DNA of 56,955 nucleotides, the filler included, from Platydemus manokwari (Eukaryota), in NCBI GenBank assembly GCA_037951405.1. It is 5 parts of 5 records of this genome, joined end to end, with 100 filler letters (N's around TTAATTAATTAA, not from the genome) between each part and the next. Parts side by side here need not be neighbours in the genome. Positions count along the whole stretch, not along the records: positions 1 to 10,639 come from JBBMOY011117441.1; 4 more parts are not named here. One strand, 5' to 3'. The notes beneath the pieces are model-generated. The model did no database searches. It had not been told where the DNA came from and saw only the letters and a list, made by a program, of their open reading frames with translations. The position numbers were made by a program, and so were the translations under genes. Each line of letters starts with the position of its first letter. Position 1 is the stretch's first letter. Below are positions 1 to 10,639 of this stretch, piece by piece.

Positions 1-3000
1 TATAAATTCAATGTAAATGAAAGACCGCGAATTGTTGAGAAAATAAGATTGATAATCAATTTAGTTGAAACAAATCAGTTTGATAAAATTAATGAAGATT
101 TGGAAAAATTCATTACAAATATAGTACGCCGTTTAAAAAACATTTTCAAGAAGCCTCATGGTAAGAAGATTGATGATAAGAAACCTCAAGGTGAGAATAT
201 TGATGATAAGAAACCTCAAGGTGAGTCGATTGATAAAAAGAAACCTCAGGGTGAGACGATTGATGATAAAAAACCTCAAGGTGAGAATATTGATGGTAAG
301 GAACCTCAAGGTGAAACGATTGATGATAAGAAACCTCAGGGTGAGTCGATTGATAAAAAGAAACCTCAGGGTGAGAATATTGATAATAAAAAACCCCATG
401 ATGAGAAGTTTCATGATAAGAAGCTTAAACTGAAATATGATAGAAAAGTAAAATTTCTTACAATTATTCAATTCTTTAAAATAATCAATTGGGAAAAATT
501 TATCTATAAATTCAATGTAAATGAAAGACCGCGAATTGTTGAGAAAATAAGATTGATAATCAATTTAGTTGAAACAAATCAATTTGATAAAATTAAAGAA
601 GATTTGGAAAAATTCATTACAAATATTGTAGTCCGTTTTAAAATCATTTTAAAGAAACCTCACGGTAAGAAGATTGATGATAAGAAACCTCAGGGTCAGA
701 ATATTGATGATAAGAAACCTCAAGGTGAGACTATTGATGATAAGAAACCTCAATTTGAGAATATTGATGATAAGAAACCTCAAGGTGAATCGATTGATAA
801 AAAGAAACCTCAAGGTGAGACTATTGATGATAAGAAACCTCAAGGTGAGAATATTGATGATAAGAAACCTCAAGGTGAGACGATTGATGATATGAAACCT
901 CAAGGTGAGAATATTGATGATAAGAAATTTCAAGGAGAGAAAATTGTTGACAAGATACCTGAAGATGTGACGATTGATGATAAGAAACCCCCAGGTAAGA
1001 AAATTGATGATGAGAAGCTAAAAGTCATTTATGATAAAAATGTAAAATTTCTTACAATTATTCAATTCTTAAAAAAAATCAATTGGGAAAAATTTATTTA
1101 TAAGTTTAATCTAAATGAAAGACTGCGAATTATTGAGAAAATAAGATTGATAATTAATTTAGTTGAAAAGAATCAGCTTGATAATATTAATGTAGATTTG
1201 GAGAATTTTATAACAAGTATTGTTAACCAGTTTAAAAACATTTCTAATGCTTTTACAACAAGAGAAATAATAAATACAATTCATGTTTATTTACCAAGTA
1301 ATTGGAAAGATCTCCTTAGACGAATTCCTAGAATTGATCAAAATTTATGGATCGAGAGAATTAATTTTTTAGTATCAAAATTGAATGATACAAAAGCTGA
1401 GGTCAATGTCGATTATCTGAATGAATTGCAAAACATTATCGATTTGATTTATCAAGAAGATTTAAAATTTAAAAAAGAAAATAAGTTAAGTGTTCAATCT
1501 GTTAACGATTTCCGAGACAAATTAAGACAATTAAAAGAATGGAATTGGGAATCTCTTCAAATTTACATTGATGAGAAAATTCGTCAACAGATAATTAATG
1601 AGATTAAAAGATTTATGACTATTTCCGATAATAACAAGTTGGATGAACTAAATATTAAAACATACAATTGGTTTATACAAATATTTGGTATATTTTCCAA
1701 ATATAATGAAATTATTAAAAAAGGTTTCGTGTTTAATGCTCAGACTAAAGAATGGGAAAAGAAAATTGTAGAACCAGTTGGCGAAAATAAACCAAATAAA
1801 ACTGTTATTGACGAAAAAGTGAAAAATGACTTAATATCCCAAGTCAATCAATTGAAAAGTTGGAATTGGGAAACAATGTTGATATATGTGGATGAAAATA
1901 TGCGTAAGCAAACTAGAGATAATATTCAAAAGATAATCTCGATCATTGATAATAAACAATTTGATCAAATCGATAATCAATTTTTGAGTTGGTTTTTACA
2001 AATATTTGATATATTTGCCGAATATAATGAAAATGTTAAAAATGGTTTTGTTTTTAATGCTCAGACTAAAGAATGGGAAAAGAAAATTGTAATACAAGTT
2101 GGCGAAAATAAACCAAATAAAACTGTTATTGACGAAAAAGTGAAAAATGACTTAATTTTCAAAGTCAACCAATTGAAAAGTTGGAATTGGGAAACAATGT
2201 TGATATATGTGGATGAAAATATTCGTAAGCAAATTAGAGATAATATTCAAAAGATAATCTCGATCATTGATAATAAACAATTCGATCAAATCGATAGTCA
2301 ATATGTGAATAATTTTGTACAAATATTTGGTACATTTTCCAAATATAATGAAAATATTAAAAATGGTTTTGTGTTTAATGCTCAGACTAAAGTGTGGGAA
2401 AAGAAAATTGTAGGGCCAGTTGGCGAAAATAAACCCACTAAAACTGTTATTGACGAAAAAGTGAAAAACGACTTAATATCCCAAGTCAATCAATTGAAAA
2501 GTTGGAATTGGGAAACAATGTTGATATATGTGGATGAAAATATTCGTAACCAAATTAGAGATAATATTCAAAAGATGATCTCGATCGTTGATAATAAACA
2601 ATTCGATCAAATCGATAGTCAATTTGTGAGTTGGTTTTTACAAATATTTGGTATATTTTCCAAATATAATGAAAATATTAAAACTGGTTTCGTGTTTAAT
2701 GCTCAGACTAAAGTATGGGAAAAGAAAATTGGCAAGACTTTCCGAAAAAAAAGGAATATTTATGTAGAACGAAGAGAAAAGATAAATTCACATCACAGAG
2801 TGGGATCTGTCGAACACAATAAACACATTGGAATAAATAGTGGGAATTCAAAAGTCGGTGTAGGAAATACTGTGCATGAACAATTTCAAATTAAAAGTAA
2901 AAATATTATAAAAGATAGATATAAAGTTGGGGAAGATAGATCCAAAGTTATTCAGATGGTCAGTTCTCGTGGTCATGGAATAAAAATGGTTGGCGGGGTT

Positions 3001-3203
3001 CACTTTTATCCTTTAATTGGTCTCAATTTAAGGTAATTTTAATTTTTCACACTGACTTATTGATTTCAAAATTTAGGAAACATTCAAGCTTGAATCGTTT
3101 TCACTTCTGTACATATGTTCGAAAGGTCGACAGTGGATTCTTAACAAAATTCACCAATTGTGGAATTAGACAACAATTCATTTGCAAAAAACAATTGAAT
3201 TAA
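1..3203 (+). CDS. Split C-type lectin / giant helical-repeat protein, paralog A (5' part lies upstream of the window)
   Basis: Frame is open from position 1 to donor AG|GTAATT at 3032/3033. A 44-nt intron (3033-3076) leads to terminal exon 3077-3203 encoding KHSSLNRFHFCTYVRKVDSGFLTKFTNCGIRQQFICKKQLN*, which matches the C...C...FIC pattern of a CTLD C-terminal half. Homologous to the gene at 6653-10414. Confidence 0.85.
148..420 (+). repeat. 30-bp coding minisatellite (KKPQGENIDD)n, cluster 1, ~9 units
   Basis: Units of AAGAAACCTCAAGGTGAGAATATTGATGAT are visible directly. Confidence 0.95.
652..1017 (+). repeat. 30-bp coding minisatellite (KKPQGENIDD)n, cluster 2, ~12 units
   Basis: Same unit as cluster 1. 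Part of a larger duplication whose units start near 1, 505 and 1099. Confidence 0.95.
1666..2730 (+). repeat. 321-bp (107-aa) near-identical coding tandem repeat, ~3.3 units
   Basis: GCTCAGACTAAAG recurs at 1738, 2059, 2380 and 2701, an exact 321-bp period. Confidence 0.95.
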
Positions 3204-3669
3204 AAATATAAACCTAAATTACAATTTGTTTTTTGTCAATAGTTCAACATTTATTAAAGAATTGATATCAAAACATTAATCAATAACTTAATGCTTTCTC
3301 TCAAATTTGAGACCGCATTCAATTAAAATAATTTATAAATTTGTACATTTCTCCTCAAAATATTTCGTTTTAGGATAATCGAATTTAATTGTATTCTCTA
3401 TAGAAATTGTTTCGAGTTGCTTTGCAAATTTAAGATTGTAATTTGTGGTCGATATCTTTTCGTTTTAAAGATTTGTGTCTATTATTTTCGTCAAAAGTTT
3501 TCTTGAGTAGTTATTATGTTTTACACATTAAGTCCTTCGTGGATTAGAACTCGTAGCAAAGAGTTTGTTATCTTTTTATTTTATTTATTATATTTTTTTA
3601 GCTTATTATTTATACACTGTTCATGATTTCATGCCGTATTTATTTTACAAATTCTAATTTGTACAAGAT

Positions 3670-4020
3670 AATTTAGCCTAAGTTATGAAAAATGGCTCTA
3701 AAATAAAAAATTTAGTTTTAGGTGCATTATAAAAAATTTATAGTAATTAATTAATATAATTCTAAATTTTTGTTTAATTGTCAGAAAAAAATATCTGTGA
3801 AATCGAAAATTAGATAAAACAGAGCTTTAGTATTTTATTAACATGACTACTTGAAAAATCGTTCATAAATGTCAAATTTCAATAAATCGAAAATTAGAGA
3901 TGGAAACTAATTTTACAATTAGAATGAATTTGTGAGAATTTTACATTTATTTTACAAAAACAATTGATATTCGATTATTAAAACATGTCGGGTTTTGTTA
4001 GGACGTTATGTCATCTAATG
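3670..4020 (-). repeat. Diverged copy of an AT-rich dispersed repeat, reverse orientation relative to 34650-35010
   Basis: By-eye similarity to the reverse complement of 34650-35010 (CTAAAATAAAAA...CAGAGCTT...TTGAAAAA blocks in the same order). Confidence 0.55.
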
Positions 4021-4439
4021 TTTTATTGAATATCTTCCTAACTTTAGATATCTACATGGCATTATTAACCATTTAAAATTGTTTATCAACCCAGGAAATC
4101 GATTTATGTGCAACCACAATAATGAAGTACTTTTGAAATCCAGTTAGTTCATATAATTTTTCTCTAAATTTATAATTCTTTTTTAAAATTAATTTTGATA
4201 TGAAATTTTAAAAAATATTCCTGAAATTAAAATATTAAAATTAAGATGAAAATTTCATCAAAATGGAATTAGATTAAAGTGCCCATAATTTTTTGTTATA
4301 TTATTTATTTATGTTTTATTATGTTATTTTCTAAATACCCTTATTATATTATATTTTAATAAAATAACTTTTGCTTAATTTGTGTTTCAAAGTGGTTTGG
4401 AATTGCCGTCATCCATTGAATAGCTTTTGACTATAATGA

Positions 4440-5060
4440 CCTTGTTTAAAAGGGCAACCAAAAAGTTCCCACTGAAGATGCAAATTTTAAAAATGTGAGT
4501 AATTCACATTGTGCTGTCCCGCAATAGCGTTGAAATGAGTGTCTTCAGTACCAACTTTAATAAGAACAGTAGACAGATAATCCGTTGTTTTCATAACAAG
4601 CATGAATTAGGCATTTGTATTACTCTACTATAGATTATAATAGTGAATTTGATTTGATACTTGCAAGACGAAGTATCTCTTGAATTTCCCTCACAATTGC
4701 AAAACATCATAATAATTGGTAGAGTCAGGATTAAAGTTAGTAATTGATATGGATTGTGTTAGATCATTATATACAAAAAATTACTCTTCTAGGCCAAGTT
4801 CATTAATAACATTAAAAACATAAGAAATGTTAAAAAATTGTCGAAGTTGCATATGCCTAAAAACAAAATCAATATTTCAAGATTTGATTCATCATGACTA
4901 TATCCATTAGTAAGGTAGTTATTAGTATTCGGAATGATGTCCTTTCACTCAATGGAACCACCACAGCCCAACGATATTAAGGAATAAAATTTGGTGGAAA
5001 TCCAGTTTCCGTTTATTTTCATGGATATACTCTTGTTCGAAAGACTACGATTTGTGGACA
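4440..5060 (-). pseudogene. Decayed multi-exon gene, possibly F5/8 type C (discoidin)-like
   Basis: Partly splice-flanked peptides HMQLRQFFNISYVFNV, DYLSTVLIKVGTEDTHF and WELFGCPF. No continuous frame could be built. Confidence 0.25.
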
Positions 5061-6610
5061 GCTGAATGACATAAAAGCAAATCATTACTCCTCAATTAAC
5101 CTTATAGGCTGTTAGTGATAAATCAGATCATTAGAATCAAAATAAATTTTTAAAAAATTTGGAATCATTAAAGATTTGCCTTTATATTCCATGGTCCTGG
5201 AAAACACCTTTAATCGGGTCCAGCCAATAGTTAATTTATTTTATTCTTTCATAGACAAGCAGAACCCAACAGCAGTTATCAACATTTACTGGTAAAAACA
5301 GCTTAAATATTTGTTGATAAACTATAAAAGTATCATAGGGTATTTTGTATTTGTTTATGATTTCGGACATAATAATCGTATCAATGAAATTAAAATACAT
5401 CAATATCAAGATTAAATGATAATCGATAATTAAAAAATCAAATCATTAAAGTTTATAAAAATCGAATCAGTTTGGATGGGCCTTTGAGAACTAGTAACTC
5501 ATTCTCACAAATATCCTATAAATAGTTTTGTGCGTCTGTGTTTTTTAGGTGGCTTATACTTTACATGTGAAATTTCATGTTTTGTTTGGTCTCCTGGAAA
5601 GAATGCTTTGTATGTGTAAGTACGATATGTGAAGACAATGTCTATACTGGTACTCTTTAAACAAAATTTCTAATAAATGATGAAATCTTGATGTTACCCT
5701 GAAGAACATTATATTATTTATAAATATAAACACAACCACAGCACACAATCCTTATAAAGAGATTGAAATACATATTGAAATCCAACAGCCTAAATAATAA
5801 TAAAATATAAACACCAATATTTAGCTCACCATTAAAATAGTGATGATGAGACACTAATATTGCTGGGTTTTTATCTTTCATATCTGAATTTTGGAGCATT
5901 TTATCTACTTTGTAGTCTAGATTTCCACTAAAGTGTTCACAGCAATTAAGTAAGTTAAGTTAATATTGTTTGAAACTAAATCTAAAAACGTTATTTTGAA
6001 CTTTATTACATACGAAAAGGGGTAATTTTAACAAATATTATTAAATAATAAACTAATTAAAAAGCTACAAAGAAATTAGGTCACTAATGAATTGATAAAA
6101 CAAATGACGAGTATTTATGAAAATTAAATTAGTAAATTTATTAAACATGTTTTAATATTAAGTGGACTTTGTTGAATAACAGGGAAAATTGAAATTAAAA
6201 TGATGATAGAAAAATAAATATTTATACTTCACCTTAACAAGAAGACCAAGATTGCTTGAATCTGTATGATCGTGGTATACAATGTAAATCTCTTACGATT
6301 CCAGATCAAATTATATGACTCATTCCGCCCAAAAATAACAGAAAATGTGCAATAATCATTATGATTTCAATAATGTATCAAGATATAACAAAAAGTACTT
6401 CAACAAAAAATATATTAGGAAATTCTATTAGATTCATTCCATGTGGTTTATCAAAATCAATATCATAAAAAATTGAAAAAGGTAAATATGGTTCTTCTAT
6501 TTCAAAATGTTTAATTCTACAGCAACGGATTTAACGTGAGTATGAATTTCACAATTATATGATAATGGCTCTCAAGATAGGCATTTGCAAATCCATATGA
6601 TTCAAGAATT

Positions 6611-6618
6611 TATATAAA
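6611..6618 (+). promoter_or_regulatory. Candidate TATA box of split-lectin paralog B
   Basis: TATATAAA ~35 nt upstream of ATG 6653. The AT-rich background weakens the call. Confidence 0.4.
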
Positions 6619-6652
6619 TAATTGAGCAAACATCAAGGTGTAAAACTCAAAA

Positions 6653-9600
6653 ATGAAAAAGATTTTGTTAGCAATTAAATTGTTAATGCTCGTACATCTA
6701 TGTAAGATTTGCAGTTACTATGTCGATTTTGTTTTTCATTAATAAATTTGATTTTCAAAGGTACATCAATTTGCAGCGACGCGTTAGACGAAGAATTTGG
6801 TACAAAATTTGAAATTAACTATTTGTTATCTTTATTAATGGTTTTTTAGAACGATATTGTGTACAAAACGAAGCTTGTTACTTTGTTTCGAAATTTAAAA
6901 CGACTTATGAAGATGCACAATCGATATGTGAACAAAAGATTCACCAAAGCCCTGCACCACTTATTGAGAAAGACAAGGTTTTTTCAACCATAGACAAGAT
7001 TTTACAATAATAAATAATAATTGTAGATTGTTTTAGTAAACAAAACTAATAAGAATAGCTATTGGGTGGTCGATCCTGCTAAAGAACCAGGTGGAAGGTA
7101 AGATATATTTATTTTAATTTATGGAATCCAAATTCAGTAAATAAAACATTTTTACAGGAAAAATTACATTATTATTTGACTAAAAATAAATCAAAATTTC
7201 CTTTTAAAGATTCTAAAATTATTAAAAGGTTTACAATTTCGTACCAAAGAATATTTTCAGGCTAAATTTAATTGTCAATAAAAGAATTATACTAATGTAA
7301 ATTATTATCGATAACATGCTGAAATATTGTAGACATTTTGGATCAAGAAAGAAATTCAATATCAAATTGAAACCTTTCAAAAGACAGAAAATAACTACAG
7401 TAGGCCATATAAAAATTGCTAAATTCAAACATGCATTGTTGCGAATTCTGGAAAAATACTCCAAAATTCTAGAAGAATCAAAGTGGTTTGCTTTTCTTAA
7501 TTATTACGAAGAGAGTGATCAACCAGTTATAGAACACAGAATAAAAACATTTGTTAAATTAGTAAACAAGAAAGATTTTGACTATATCGATAGAGATACG
7601 GCTGAATTCATTACAGAAGCTGTGGCGAAATTAATAGAATACGAAACAAGATATCTCATTGATAATATGTATGATGTTAACAAAAAATTGTCACTATTCA
7701 AAAGATTTGTGAAATACATTTCATTACTGGAAGAAATAAATTGGGAAGAATTGGTTAAAATTTATGATGAATACAGGAGTGATGAAATAATAAAACGAAT
7801 GAAGATATTCATCGATTCCGTTAGAAATTTGCAATTAGAAAATTTAGATGAAAATTCAATTGAATTAGTAAGACATATTGTGAAACCAATATTAAAAATC
7901 AAAATAAGAATTCTTTTCGATCATGATCAAGATAAGGAAAGAGCCCAATCAATTATGGATACATCGAAAAAATATGTAAGCATATTAGAACATTTAAAAT
8001 GGAAAGAAATCGCAGAAAAAGTTGAAGAAAGTAAGAAAAAAGAAATAAAAGAGAAAATAACGACATTCATGGAATCAGTAAGACAAGGTAAAAAGGAAAA
8101 TATTAATATCGAATCAATAAATTCAATAAACGAAATAATAACGATATTAGAGACACTACAAATAAAGTTAATATACAGTTTGAAAAATAATAACAACATT
8201 TACAATGCAATAATAAACGCAAGTAAAAGTTTTATAGACATAATGCAAACATTAGATTGGAAAAATTTGATAAAATATTTCGAAGAAAAAGTTAGAGGAG
8301 ATATTGATAAAAAAATTAACACGATTATCAAATTGAGTAATGAAAATAAAGAAAGTAAAATAACTATAGATTTATTGAATAATATACATGAAATTGTCAC
8401 ACATTTCCAAAGGATTACAATCAGAGAAGCCTGTAATTGCGATACCTTTGAAAAAGCAGACGAAAATTACGAAAATCATATGTTAGTTGTACAATATTTG
8501 ATGAAAAATAAATGGAAGGAAATGGTTCAACACATACATATCAATAAAAGACATGAAGTCATAGAACAAATAAAATTATTTATAAAACTTGTGAGGGACA
8601 AAGAAATTAACAAAATAAATGGCAAAATGCAAAACGAAATCATAAAAATAGCAGAAAAATTAACTGAAATACAAATAAAACAGGACAAAAATAGAATATT
8701 CCGAAACATAATCACTTATTTTAAAGGATTGCAGTGGGAAAACCTTTTAAAATATTTCGATGCAAATCAAAGATCGGATATTACAGATAAAATAAAATCA
8801 GCTATCAATATTGTCACAAATAAGAATTATGGAGAAATAACGAGTGATTTATACAAATATATAGAAGGAATTTATCACAAATTCAAGCAATACGATATTG
8901 AACACGAAAAACCAAGCCATGTCACTGTCACTGATAAACATAGAGATTTTGTAAGTAGTGTTCGATTCTTACAAGGTGCTAAATGGGAAGGGCTTTTGAA
9001 ACATTTTGATGAAAAAGAAAGACCCGAGATCAGAGACAAAGTGAATTTAGCTATAAAACTCGTTCATAATAAGGAATACAATAAAATCGATGATAATTTA
9101 CACAAATTCATTCATACCGTCACTAAAAGATTTAAAAAATTTGATATCGATCTTTACAAACTAAGTGAAAAGAACATTTATGATATCACTGTAAAATTAA
9201 ATCAATTAATAAAATGGAAATGGAATAGTTTGATGATATATTGGCATGTTATTATCAGGTCAGAAATAGAAAAATATATTGAAAAATTTGTCAGTGCCGT
9301 TGATAAGAAACAATTTGATAATTTAGATTTAGAAAGTTTTAATAAATTTGTTCAAATTTTTGATACCTTTGCTAGAATAAAGAAATCTCTTGAACATGGA
9401 TATATTTTCAATTTTAAATCCGACACTTGGGAAAAGCCTAAATCACATATTTTAGACTCAGTAACTGGTAAATATGTTTTACCACCGACAGCCATAGCTG
9501 GTTTAATCGATAAAGTTACAAAATTATTAAAATATGATTGGAAGACTCTTATAGAGTATATTGATGAAAGCAATCGTAAACAAATTTCCGTAAAATTCTC

Positions 9601-10414
9601 TACAATTATTACACTCATTGAAACGAAGCAGTTTGACAAAATTACTGTTAAATATCTCAAATTTTTCGAACACACTTACAATACATTTGCACAGTTATAT
9701 CATCTAATCCAAAATGGATATGTTTATAATGTTCAATCTCAAGTTTGGGTAAGAAAAGTTCAAGTGAAATCAGTTCATATCGCTAAAACAGTTATTGATG
9801 TAAAAACAAAATCGGATCTAGTACAAAAAGTGAACCAACTAAAACAAATGAAATGGCAAACCATGTTGTCATTTGTCGACATAAATAGTCGTCAACAAAT
9901 TAGCGAACATGTTACTAAAACAATTACAACCGTTGAAAATGAACAATTTTCTCAAATCACTGTGGATCATTTTAATACTTTCTCGAGTGTTTTTAATACC
10001 TTTTCTAAAATGAATACGTTCTTGCAAAGTGGATACACGTTCAATACGGAATCTAGCGTATGGGAAAGTTCAGAAAGTTCGACAGTTGAAACTATTTCTC
10101 GTAAGAAAAGATCACTATTGTCCGAATTTCGTGAAAAAATAGCTAATAAAATATCGAGAGAATTTCATTTATTTCGTGAAACAAAGAATCGACTTGGTGA
10201 CATTCTTCGAAAACCTCTAAACTGGTTAAGCTCGAAGTATTTTTATTTTGATATATATTTACTTTTATGATACTATAATTCCCTTAGGAAACTTTCAATC
10301 TTTAATCCGTACCGATTATGCACTTACGTGAGAAAAAGCGGCAATGAATTCTTAACAAAATTCACAAATTGTGGAATAAAACAACAATTTATTTGCAAAA
10401 AGAAATTGAGTTAA
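6653..10414 (+). CDS. Secreted split C-type lectin-like protein with a 968-codon helical-repeat insert, paralog B (complete)
   Basis: Exons 6653-6701, 6761-6799, 6850-6977, 7027-7097, 7333-10236 and 10288-10414, all GT-AG and phase-compatible. Signal-peptide-like MKKILLAIKLLMLVHLCTSICS. CTLD N-half YCVQNEACYFVSKFKTTYEDAQSICEQ...SYWVV. C-half LCTYVRK...FTNCGIKQQFICKK*. Optional extra exon 7138-7228. Confidence 0.85.
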
Positions 10415-10639
10415 ATAAAACACTCTAAATTGCATTTTGATTGATATCTAATGCTTATATATTATACTTTTATGTCATTACTGAAAAGATATTTTATAAT
10501 GATTCTGAGGTTATAAAAAAATTATATTAAGGTTACATTTTTGTGCAAAAGGTTAATTTTTGGGCTAAGGTATAGACTACTCTGAACATTGTTTTATCAA
10601 ACTAATTTAATCTAAAAGTTGACCTACATATTATGAATA

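Follow-up and report, generated by a model that had tools for sequence, protein, structure and literature searches.

An R-x-K-R motif conserved at the end of a repeat insert in a C-type-lectin-like protein family of Platydemus manokwari: a putative site of two-chain processing

The R-x-K-R motif that directly follows the last repeat in two tandem genes of Platydemus manokwari, A and B, is, as judged from sequence comparison, a feature of a whole protein family and is not confined to these two genes. Read from their exons, genes A and B would encode secreted C-type-lectin-like proteins in which the lectin fold is interrupted by a repeat arm of ~970 residues. Maturation into two chains by a convertase nick is the best reading of the motif; the cleavage itself we infer, and we consider it reasonably probable. 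This two-chain interpretation, put forward in the initial annotation, is favored by the conservation of the motif, by the disordered linker predicted around it, and by the position of cysteines C1 and C4 on either side of the site, whereas two of its parts, excision of the insert and an additional IIKR/H site, are not supported.

In the scheme that we propose, a furin-type proprotein convertase would nick the protein once, after R-x-K-R, in the secretory pathway. The N-chain would then comprise the N-terminal half of the lectin-like domain together with the repeat arm, and the C-chain, of ~75-135 residues, would comprise the variable tail and lectin strands beta3-beta5. Both chains would be kept together by the C1-C4 disulfide that is canonical for the fold and by the beta-sheet that they share, and the C2-C3 disulfide would be internal to the C-chain. 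After the nick, the arm would have one free end, and the C-chain would begin with a new N-terminus.

Gene structure and the giant insert exons

The window, that is, the entire stretch of 56,955 nucleotides, begins with contig C1117441 (positions 1-10,639), on which the two paralogs lie in tandem, both on the + strand (Table 1). All exons of gene B are present on this contig; gene A is truncated at the 5' edge, and only its giant exon and last exon are visible. Introns on the contig are 44-63 nt long, save for one of 235 nt in front of the giant exon of gene B. The giant exon of gene A ends with a phase 2 donor (ttaag/gtaatt) that is followed by a 44-nt intron, and in all ten loci tested the giant exon is connected to the last exon by a phase-compatible intron of 40-63 nt, with a phase-2 GT donor and an AG acceptor. 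An alternative donor for the gene B giant exon is found at 10224/10225. Upstream of this exon, the join from 7097 to 7333 is in frame and agrees with the structure of the C426666 and C295225 loci. The initial annotation had considered a further exon at 7138-7228, which would have supplied an IIKR/H site; it is unusable, reading AAA TAA, an in-frame stop, in the phase left by exon 4. An alternative acceptor at ~7157 was likewise rejected because of an in-frame stop. The symmetric giant exon of gene B could be a cassette exon. Alternatively, it could be a trace of the insert's origin by exonization in an intron at the long-loop position.

The inserts are built from tandem units of ~100-107 amino acids, which in gene A have a period of 321 nt and 92% identity. 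In gene B the giant exon runs from a basic, beta2-like start through helical repeats to three terminal hairpin repeats (9143-10075); in gene A it contains 10-aa arrays of the KKPQGE-NIDD type, helical repeats, and four terminal hairpin repeats. The decapeptide arrays of gene A, at 148-422 and 652-1016, consist of 9 and 12 copies of a 30-nt unit encoding KKPQGE(N/T)IDD, with an 82-83% match, and are interleaved with the helical repeats in the N-terminal part of the insert. Such arrays also occur on contig C1153827; gene B has none.

The assembly comprises 911 Mb in ~2 million contigs, with a GC content of ~27%. It contains four different full-length mitochondrial COX1 sequences (C1514745, C1389203, C1344449, and C1440324), with protein identities of 64-85%. 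One of them has AAA at Asn and ATA at Ile columns, corresponding to the flatworm/echinoderm code; the code of the other three resembles the general invertebrate one. From COX1, we suspect that the assembly derives from a mixed sample, for instance predator and prey or host and parasite. Arthropod cuticle proteins gave a single match in the assembly, and nematode cuticle collagens gave none. Together with the low GC content and the short introns (44-63 nt), the COX1 sequences suggest an AT-rich flatworm with foreign DNA that may come from prey or a host.

Table 1. Features of genes A and B in the window and junction sequences of the surveyed loci. The slash marks the putative P1/P1' bond.
Feature	Position	Strand	Sequence or basis
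Gene A giant insert exon	1-3032	+	Open frame 1-3033; tandem repeats; 5' end cut by contig edge
Gene A RKKR (P4-P1), then NIY	2743-2754	+	cga aaa aaa agg; context KTF RKKR NIY; junction RKKR/NI
Gene A last exon	3077-3203	+	C-half profile A3 matches REG4, PLA2R, and CD94 C-termini
Gene B exon 1, ATG and hydrophobic signal-peptide-like start MKKILLAIKLLMLVHL	6653-6701	+	Read from sequence; layout alike in C426666
Gene B exon 2 CTSICSDALDEEF	6761-6799	+	Splice phases from sequence; homologous exon in C426666
Gene B exon 3, start of lectin-like domain RYCVQNEACYFVSKFKTTYEDAQSIC	6850-6977	+	Ten paralogous exons; N-half profile A4
Gene B exon 4 (…SYWVVDPAKEPGG), WIGL-like strand region	7027-7097	+	Ends in phase 2
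Gene B giant insert exon, 2904 nt, phase 2-2	7333-10236	+	Open frame, splice phases, AlphaFold models
Gene B RKKR (P4-P1), then SLL, putative convertase site	10100-10111	+	cgt aag aaa aga; context TIS RKKR SLL; junction RKKR/SL
Gene B variable tail, would-be N-terminus of C-chain	10112-10236	+	Unalignable with gene A tail; low-confidence helix predicted
Gene B last exon KLSIFNPYRLCTYVRKSGNEFLTKFTNCGIKQQFICKKKLS, lectin-like C-terminus and stop	10288-10414	+	Exon alignment, C-half profile, splice phases
C1689177 junction			RMKR/AI
C1586322 junction			RMKR/AL
C426666 junction			RKKR/GL
C1665325 junction			RIKR/NI
C152655 junction			RKKR/SI
C1032745 junction			RKKR/SI
C1300139 junction			RRKR/SL
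C295225 junction			SFKR/SL (P4 Arg absent)
C1284761 junction			HSKR/TT (P4 Arg absent)

Conservation of the junction motif

Reading the codons confirmed the exact positions of RKKR given in the initial annotation for both genes, as well as its placement right after the last repeat: the motif lies 8-13 residues past the last ~107-aa repeat. The flanking sequences of A and B, which had been described as unrelated, are so downstream of the site, where BLASTP found no alignment, but not upstream, where the last repeats are homologous and share 47% identity. Conservation of R-x-K-R extends well beyond this pair. The lectin C-terminal exon is present at 11 loci of this genome. A survey of all of them found R-x-K-R at the junction after the last helix-bundle/hairpin repeat in nine, with K-R kept in the remaining two, although these counts come from paralogs of common ancestry and do not represent independent events. 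RKKR is present in five loci (A, B, C426666, C152655, and C1032745, the last two being near-duplicates of each other), RMKR in two, and RIKR and RRKR in one each; the two K-R exceptions, C295225 and C1284761, have a basic residue at P6 and/or P8. A UniParc fragment, P0002, which shares no more than 50% identity with any locus in this assembly, has RKRR/SL at the equivalent place and runs unbroken into the lectin C-terminus.

A site logo of 12 junctions has Arg at P1 in every case, Lys at P2 in 11 and Arg in one, and Arg at P4 in 10, whereas P3 is free (K, M, I, R). Downstream, a small or polar residue (S, N, A, G, H, T) occupies P1', P2' is Leu or Ile in 11 of 12, and the other flank columns vary. 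The consensus R-x-K/R-R at P4-P1 with a permissive P1' is found at 10 of the 12 junctions. Chance does not explain the junction motif. From amino acid composition, 0.1-1.1 occurrences of R-x-[KR]-R are expected per ~1000-aa exon, and ~3 when summed over the exons with the terminal module; away from the junctions, these exons contain none. Furthermore, the Arg residues at P4 and P1 are encoded by CGN (cga/cgt) in some paralogs and by AGR (aga/agg) in others, which points to selection for the amino acid itself, beyond mere inheritance of the DNA.

Several loci have peculiarities of their own. C1586322 is a near copy of C1689177 with several in-frame stops, and is probably a pseudogene; its junction still reads RMKR/AL. 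In C1300139 (open frame 543-2777, minus strand), a module has been duplicated within the giant exon and the motif is kept in both copies, in the order hairpin repeat, RKKR/HL, short tail, second basic stretch resembling an insert start, more repeats, and RRKR/SL. The tail that follows RKKR in C426666 is Gly-rich, cationic, and amphipathic (GLLSGVANLIRGVGRTIGGLFGARSRLRVRVK) and resembles antimicrobial or fusion-type peptides; the tails of the other paralogs are unlike it. The giant exons of C835757 and C1115053 belong to a more distant subfamily, the assembled part of which is without hairpin-type terminal repeats. Their extra R-x-[KR]-R occurrences were set aside as incidental, because they belong to the conserved helix of the repeat (LV-x-EKR-x-N-x-ID) and lie outside the linkers.

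The split lectin-like domain and the repeat arm

To characterize the exons on either side of the insert, ten paralogous copies of each terminal exon were aligned, and the profiles were run exon by exon against all PDB sequences. The N-half profile (A4) matches CLEC2D (E 0.0018), CD69, CD209-like proteins, snaclecs, and CD94, always at the chain start, and its matches in the PDB are almost exclusively C-type lectin-like domains (CTLDs). The C-half profile (A3) matches the extreme C-termini of REG4 (E 0.0087), PLA2R lectin domains, CD94, and bitiscetin. Pfam searches with the giant exons and with each small exon singly gave sub-threshold noise and no PF00059 match, single exons being too short.

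The cysteine C1 (A-Q-x-I-C) is invariant in all ten N-half exons, and C2, C3, and the C4 of F-I-C-K are invariant in all ten C-half exons. In gene B, C0 and C0' are found in ACYF and C1 in AQSIC of exon 3, and C2 in RLCTYV, C3 in FTNC, and C4 in FICKK of the last exon, the stop codon of which ends at 10414. Since the cysteines map as C0, C0', and C1 in the N-half and as C2, C3, and C4 in the C-half, the position of the giant exon is between strands beta2 and beta3, normally the place of the long-loop region of a CTLD. Like a canonical CTLD, the domain has this order of cysteines, an ACY-x-S…A…C start, a YW-hydrophobic strand, and an FIC-K end; unlike one, it accommodates an insert of ~970 amino acids in the long-loop region, and the EPN/QPD and WND motifs are missing. 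EPN/QPD was not seen next to C2, and the last exon has FTNC or LTNC at the WND position. With these sugar- and Ca-binding motifs absent, the domain is better described as lectin-like than as a demonstrated lectin.

The disulfides of canonical CTLDs are C1-C4 and C2-C3, and the pairing used here is taken from this established knowledge of the fold. On the exon alignments, for which exon-wise E-values are marginal, C1 would be N-terminal and C2, C3, and C4 C-terminal of R-x-K-R, and C1 would presumably pair with C4. A C1-C4 bond would tether the two chains, since the N-chain would contain C1 and the C-chain C4.

What is the arm itself? A single repeat unit, modeled with 18 paralogous units as the alignment, is predicted to form four helices and a beta-hairpin (pLDDT 91.5, pTM 0.81). 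In this genome, at least 14 contigs carry copies of the family. A word-index protein search with the last repeats (proteins of 541-1722 aa) returned no homologue. From 1.84 billion cluster representatives, searched exhaustively with a profile, only the UniParc fragments P0001 and P0002 and one weak bacterial match were recovered. The family is lineage-restricted and nearly absent from public protein sets. The bacterial match, P0003 (1078 aa), is lipoprotein-like and has ~90-aa repeats (…ITxxNFNQF…GYKFG) that match in six stretches with an E of 5e-8; its resemblance to the repeat is probably due to convergence on a helix-plus-hairpin repeat and not to homology. No specific fold relative of the repeat was found in the ESM Atlas (by features and by structure), with Foldseek against the PDB, or in a wide VIA-align search; at best, helical bundles of a generic kind, among them the Hsp70 lid, matched with Z = 6.

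Convertase cleavage and its alternatives

Would the site be accessible to a convertase? In an AlphaFold model of a 339-residue fragment, consisting of the last three repeats and the tail of gene B without the lectin core, the repeats have a pLDDT of 85-94, RKKR occupies residues 294-297 inside a segment with pLDDT <50 (residues 285-305), and the tail forms a helix of low confidence. The low pLDDT around RKKR places the site in a predicted exposed, disordered linker between the confident hairpin and the tail. The hydrophobic first exons of gene B and C426666, as read, resemble signal peptides and suggest a substrate bound for the secretory pathway. Genes for furin-like convertases are present: P-domains (Pfam PF01483) score above the cut-off on at least five contigs, and a catalytic exon with a GSIFVWASGNGG…DNCNCDGYTNSI signature matches human furin with an E of 2.6e-27. 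The convertase contigs are AT-rich, as is contig C1117441.

A basic cluster at the end of the arm could also have been kept for binding glycosaminoglycans, polyanions, or membranes, or for a structural contact, in a protein that remains a single chain. The proteins are Lys-rich (10-17% K), and secreted matrix and adhesive proteins commonly have basic patches; an example is the Lys/Arg-rich adhesion proteins of flatworms, in which a C-type lectin domain is present as well (PMC8621496). However, the columns of the motif follow the pattern of a protease site and not that of a charge patch, with P1 and P2 strict and P4 nearly so, P3 free to the extent of including Met and Ile, P1' small and P2' aliphatic, and in exons with the terminal module the motif is found at the junction alone, so that we regard retention of the cluster for binding or contact as unlikely. 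Another alternative is that the insert is not nicked at one end but excised whole in the manner of a C-peptide, one of the two outcomes envisaged in the initial annotation, through cuts at the basic start and at R-x-K-R that would leave a small two-chain lectin core. The basic start that was described for gene B (HFGSRKKFNIKLKPFKRQK) is real, and basic residues open the insert in all eight paralogs in which this part is visible, extending to RKRR/SL in C835757, RKKR/C in C1822168, and FKRRR (KFRIKLANFKRRR) in C1153827. The boundary motif R-x-[KR]-R is nevertheless present in just two of the eight, C835757 and C1822168, most having [FY]-K-R instead. Gene B and C674430 read KF-I-KLKPFKR, and C295225 reads KFRIRLKSYKRKK; C1689177 (…KSHTQRK) and C426666 (…RLRGFVRRG) have no R-x-[KR]-R. 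The alternation of hydrophobic and basic residues (KF-I-LK) suits lectin strand beta2 and is probably buried, and the in-frame stop removes the IIKR/H exon as a source of a second site. Excision may take place in a subset of paralogs and is not a feature of the family, for which we consider it distinctly improbable.

If the gene model were wrong, or if the giant exon were usually skipped, the motif would rarely or never be part of the secreted lectin. The giant exon of gene B is symmetric, exon 4 and the last exon would join in frame without it, and the product of skipping would be a compact lectin-like domain without the long loop. Against this, open frames of 700-1500 codons are not expected by chance in a genome with 27% GC, the giant-exon frames are conserved as protein on at least 14 contigs, the single repeat folds at high pLDDT, and in P0002 the repeat, tail, and lectin C-terminus occur together in one predicted protein. 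We consider an erroneous model or habitual skipping to be highly improbable.

The preferred reading, a single convertase nick after the arm, has parallels among known proteins. Furin nicks Notch at S1, in the heterodimerization domain, the insulin receptor and Met pro-receptors, and integrin alpha subunits, which become heavy and light chains. Like these two-chain proteins, the family described here has R-x-K/R-R in an exposed loop and fragments that would be held by a disulfide or a shared fold; unlike in them, cleavage here is only predicted, and the comparison is one from general knowledge. Snaclecs, which are matched by the N-half profile, are likewise CTLD chains with a long loop that does not serve sugar binding, and form disulfide-linked two-chain molecules. 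They arise from two gene products and a loop swap, however, whereas here one gene product is putatively nicked. The nicking of AB toxins and the release of the insulin C-peptide also involve a basic convertase site between two pairing cysteines and chains that stay tethered; this is an analogy from general knowledge, without similarity in sequence or fold, and a second site of the insulin type is found here only inconsistently.

Sea-star Sfp1 is cut into disulfide-linked subunits. Sfp1 and Macrostomum ap1 are large secreted proteins with a C-type lectin domain and long Lys/Arg-rich repeats (PMC8621496). In size, secretion, and the combination of a C-type lectin domain with long repeats they are similar to the proteins described here, but in them the repeats flank an uninterrupted lectin domain, whereas here the repeats split it. 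Neither the word-index nor the exhaustive profile searches found homology between proteins of the ap1/Sfp1 type and the present repeats.

Convertase sites and C-type lectin-like domains are each common. Neither the literature that was searched nor the word-index and profile searches of proteins yielded a case of a lectin-like domain with a ~1000-residue long-loop insert and a conserved terminal nick site. Tentatively, and with considerable doubt, the family may be viewed as an undescribed architecture, in which a CTLD-like, disulfide-locked clasp encloses an arm of ~1000 residues made of an orphan helix-bundle/hairpin repeat and a distal nick acts as a two-chain activation switch. If so, the nick would also expose a new, paralog-specific N-terminal peptide, which in C426666 would be the Gly-rich, cationic, amphipathic one, and the switch would activate a secreted adhesive, defensive, or membrane-active protein. 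If the nick occurs, it would represent a compact natural conversion of a loop into two chains on a very common fold, and it would offer a way into the function of this secreted family, which is expanded, with members on at least 14 contigs, and evolves fast.
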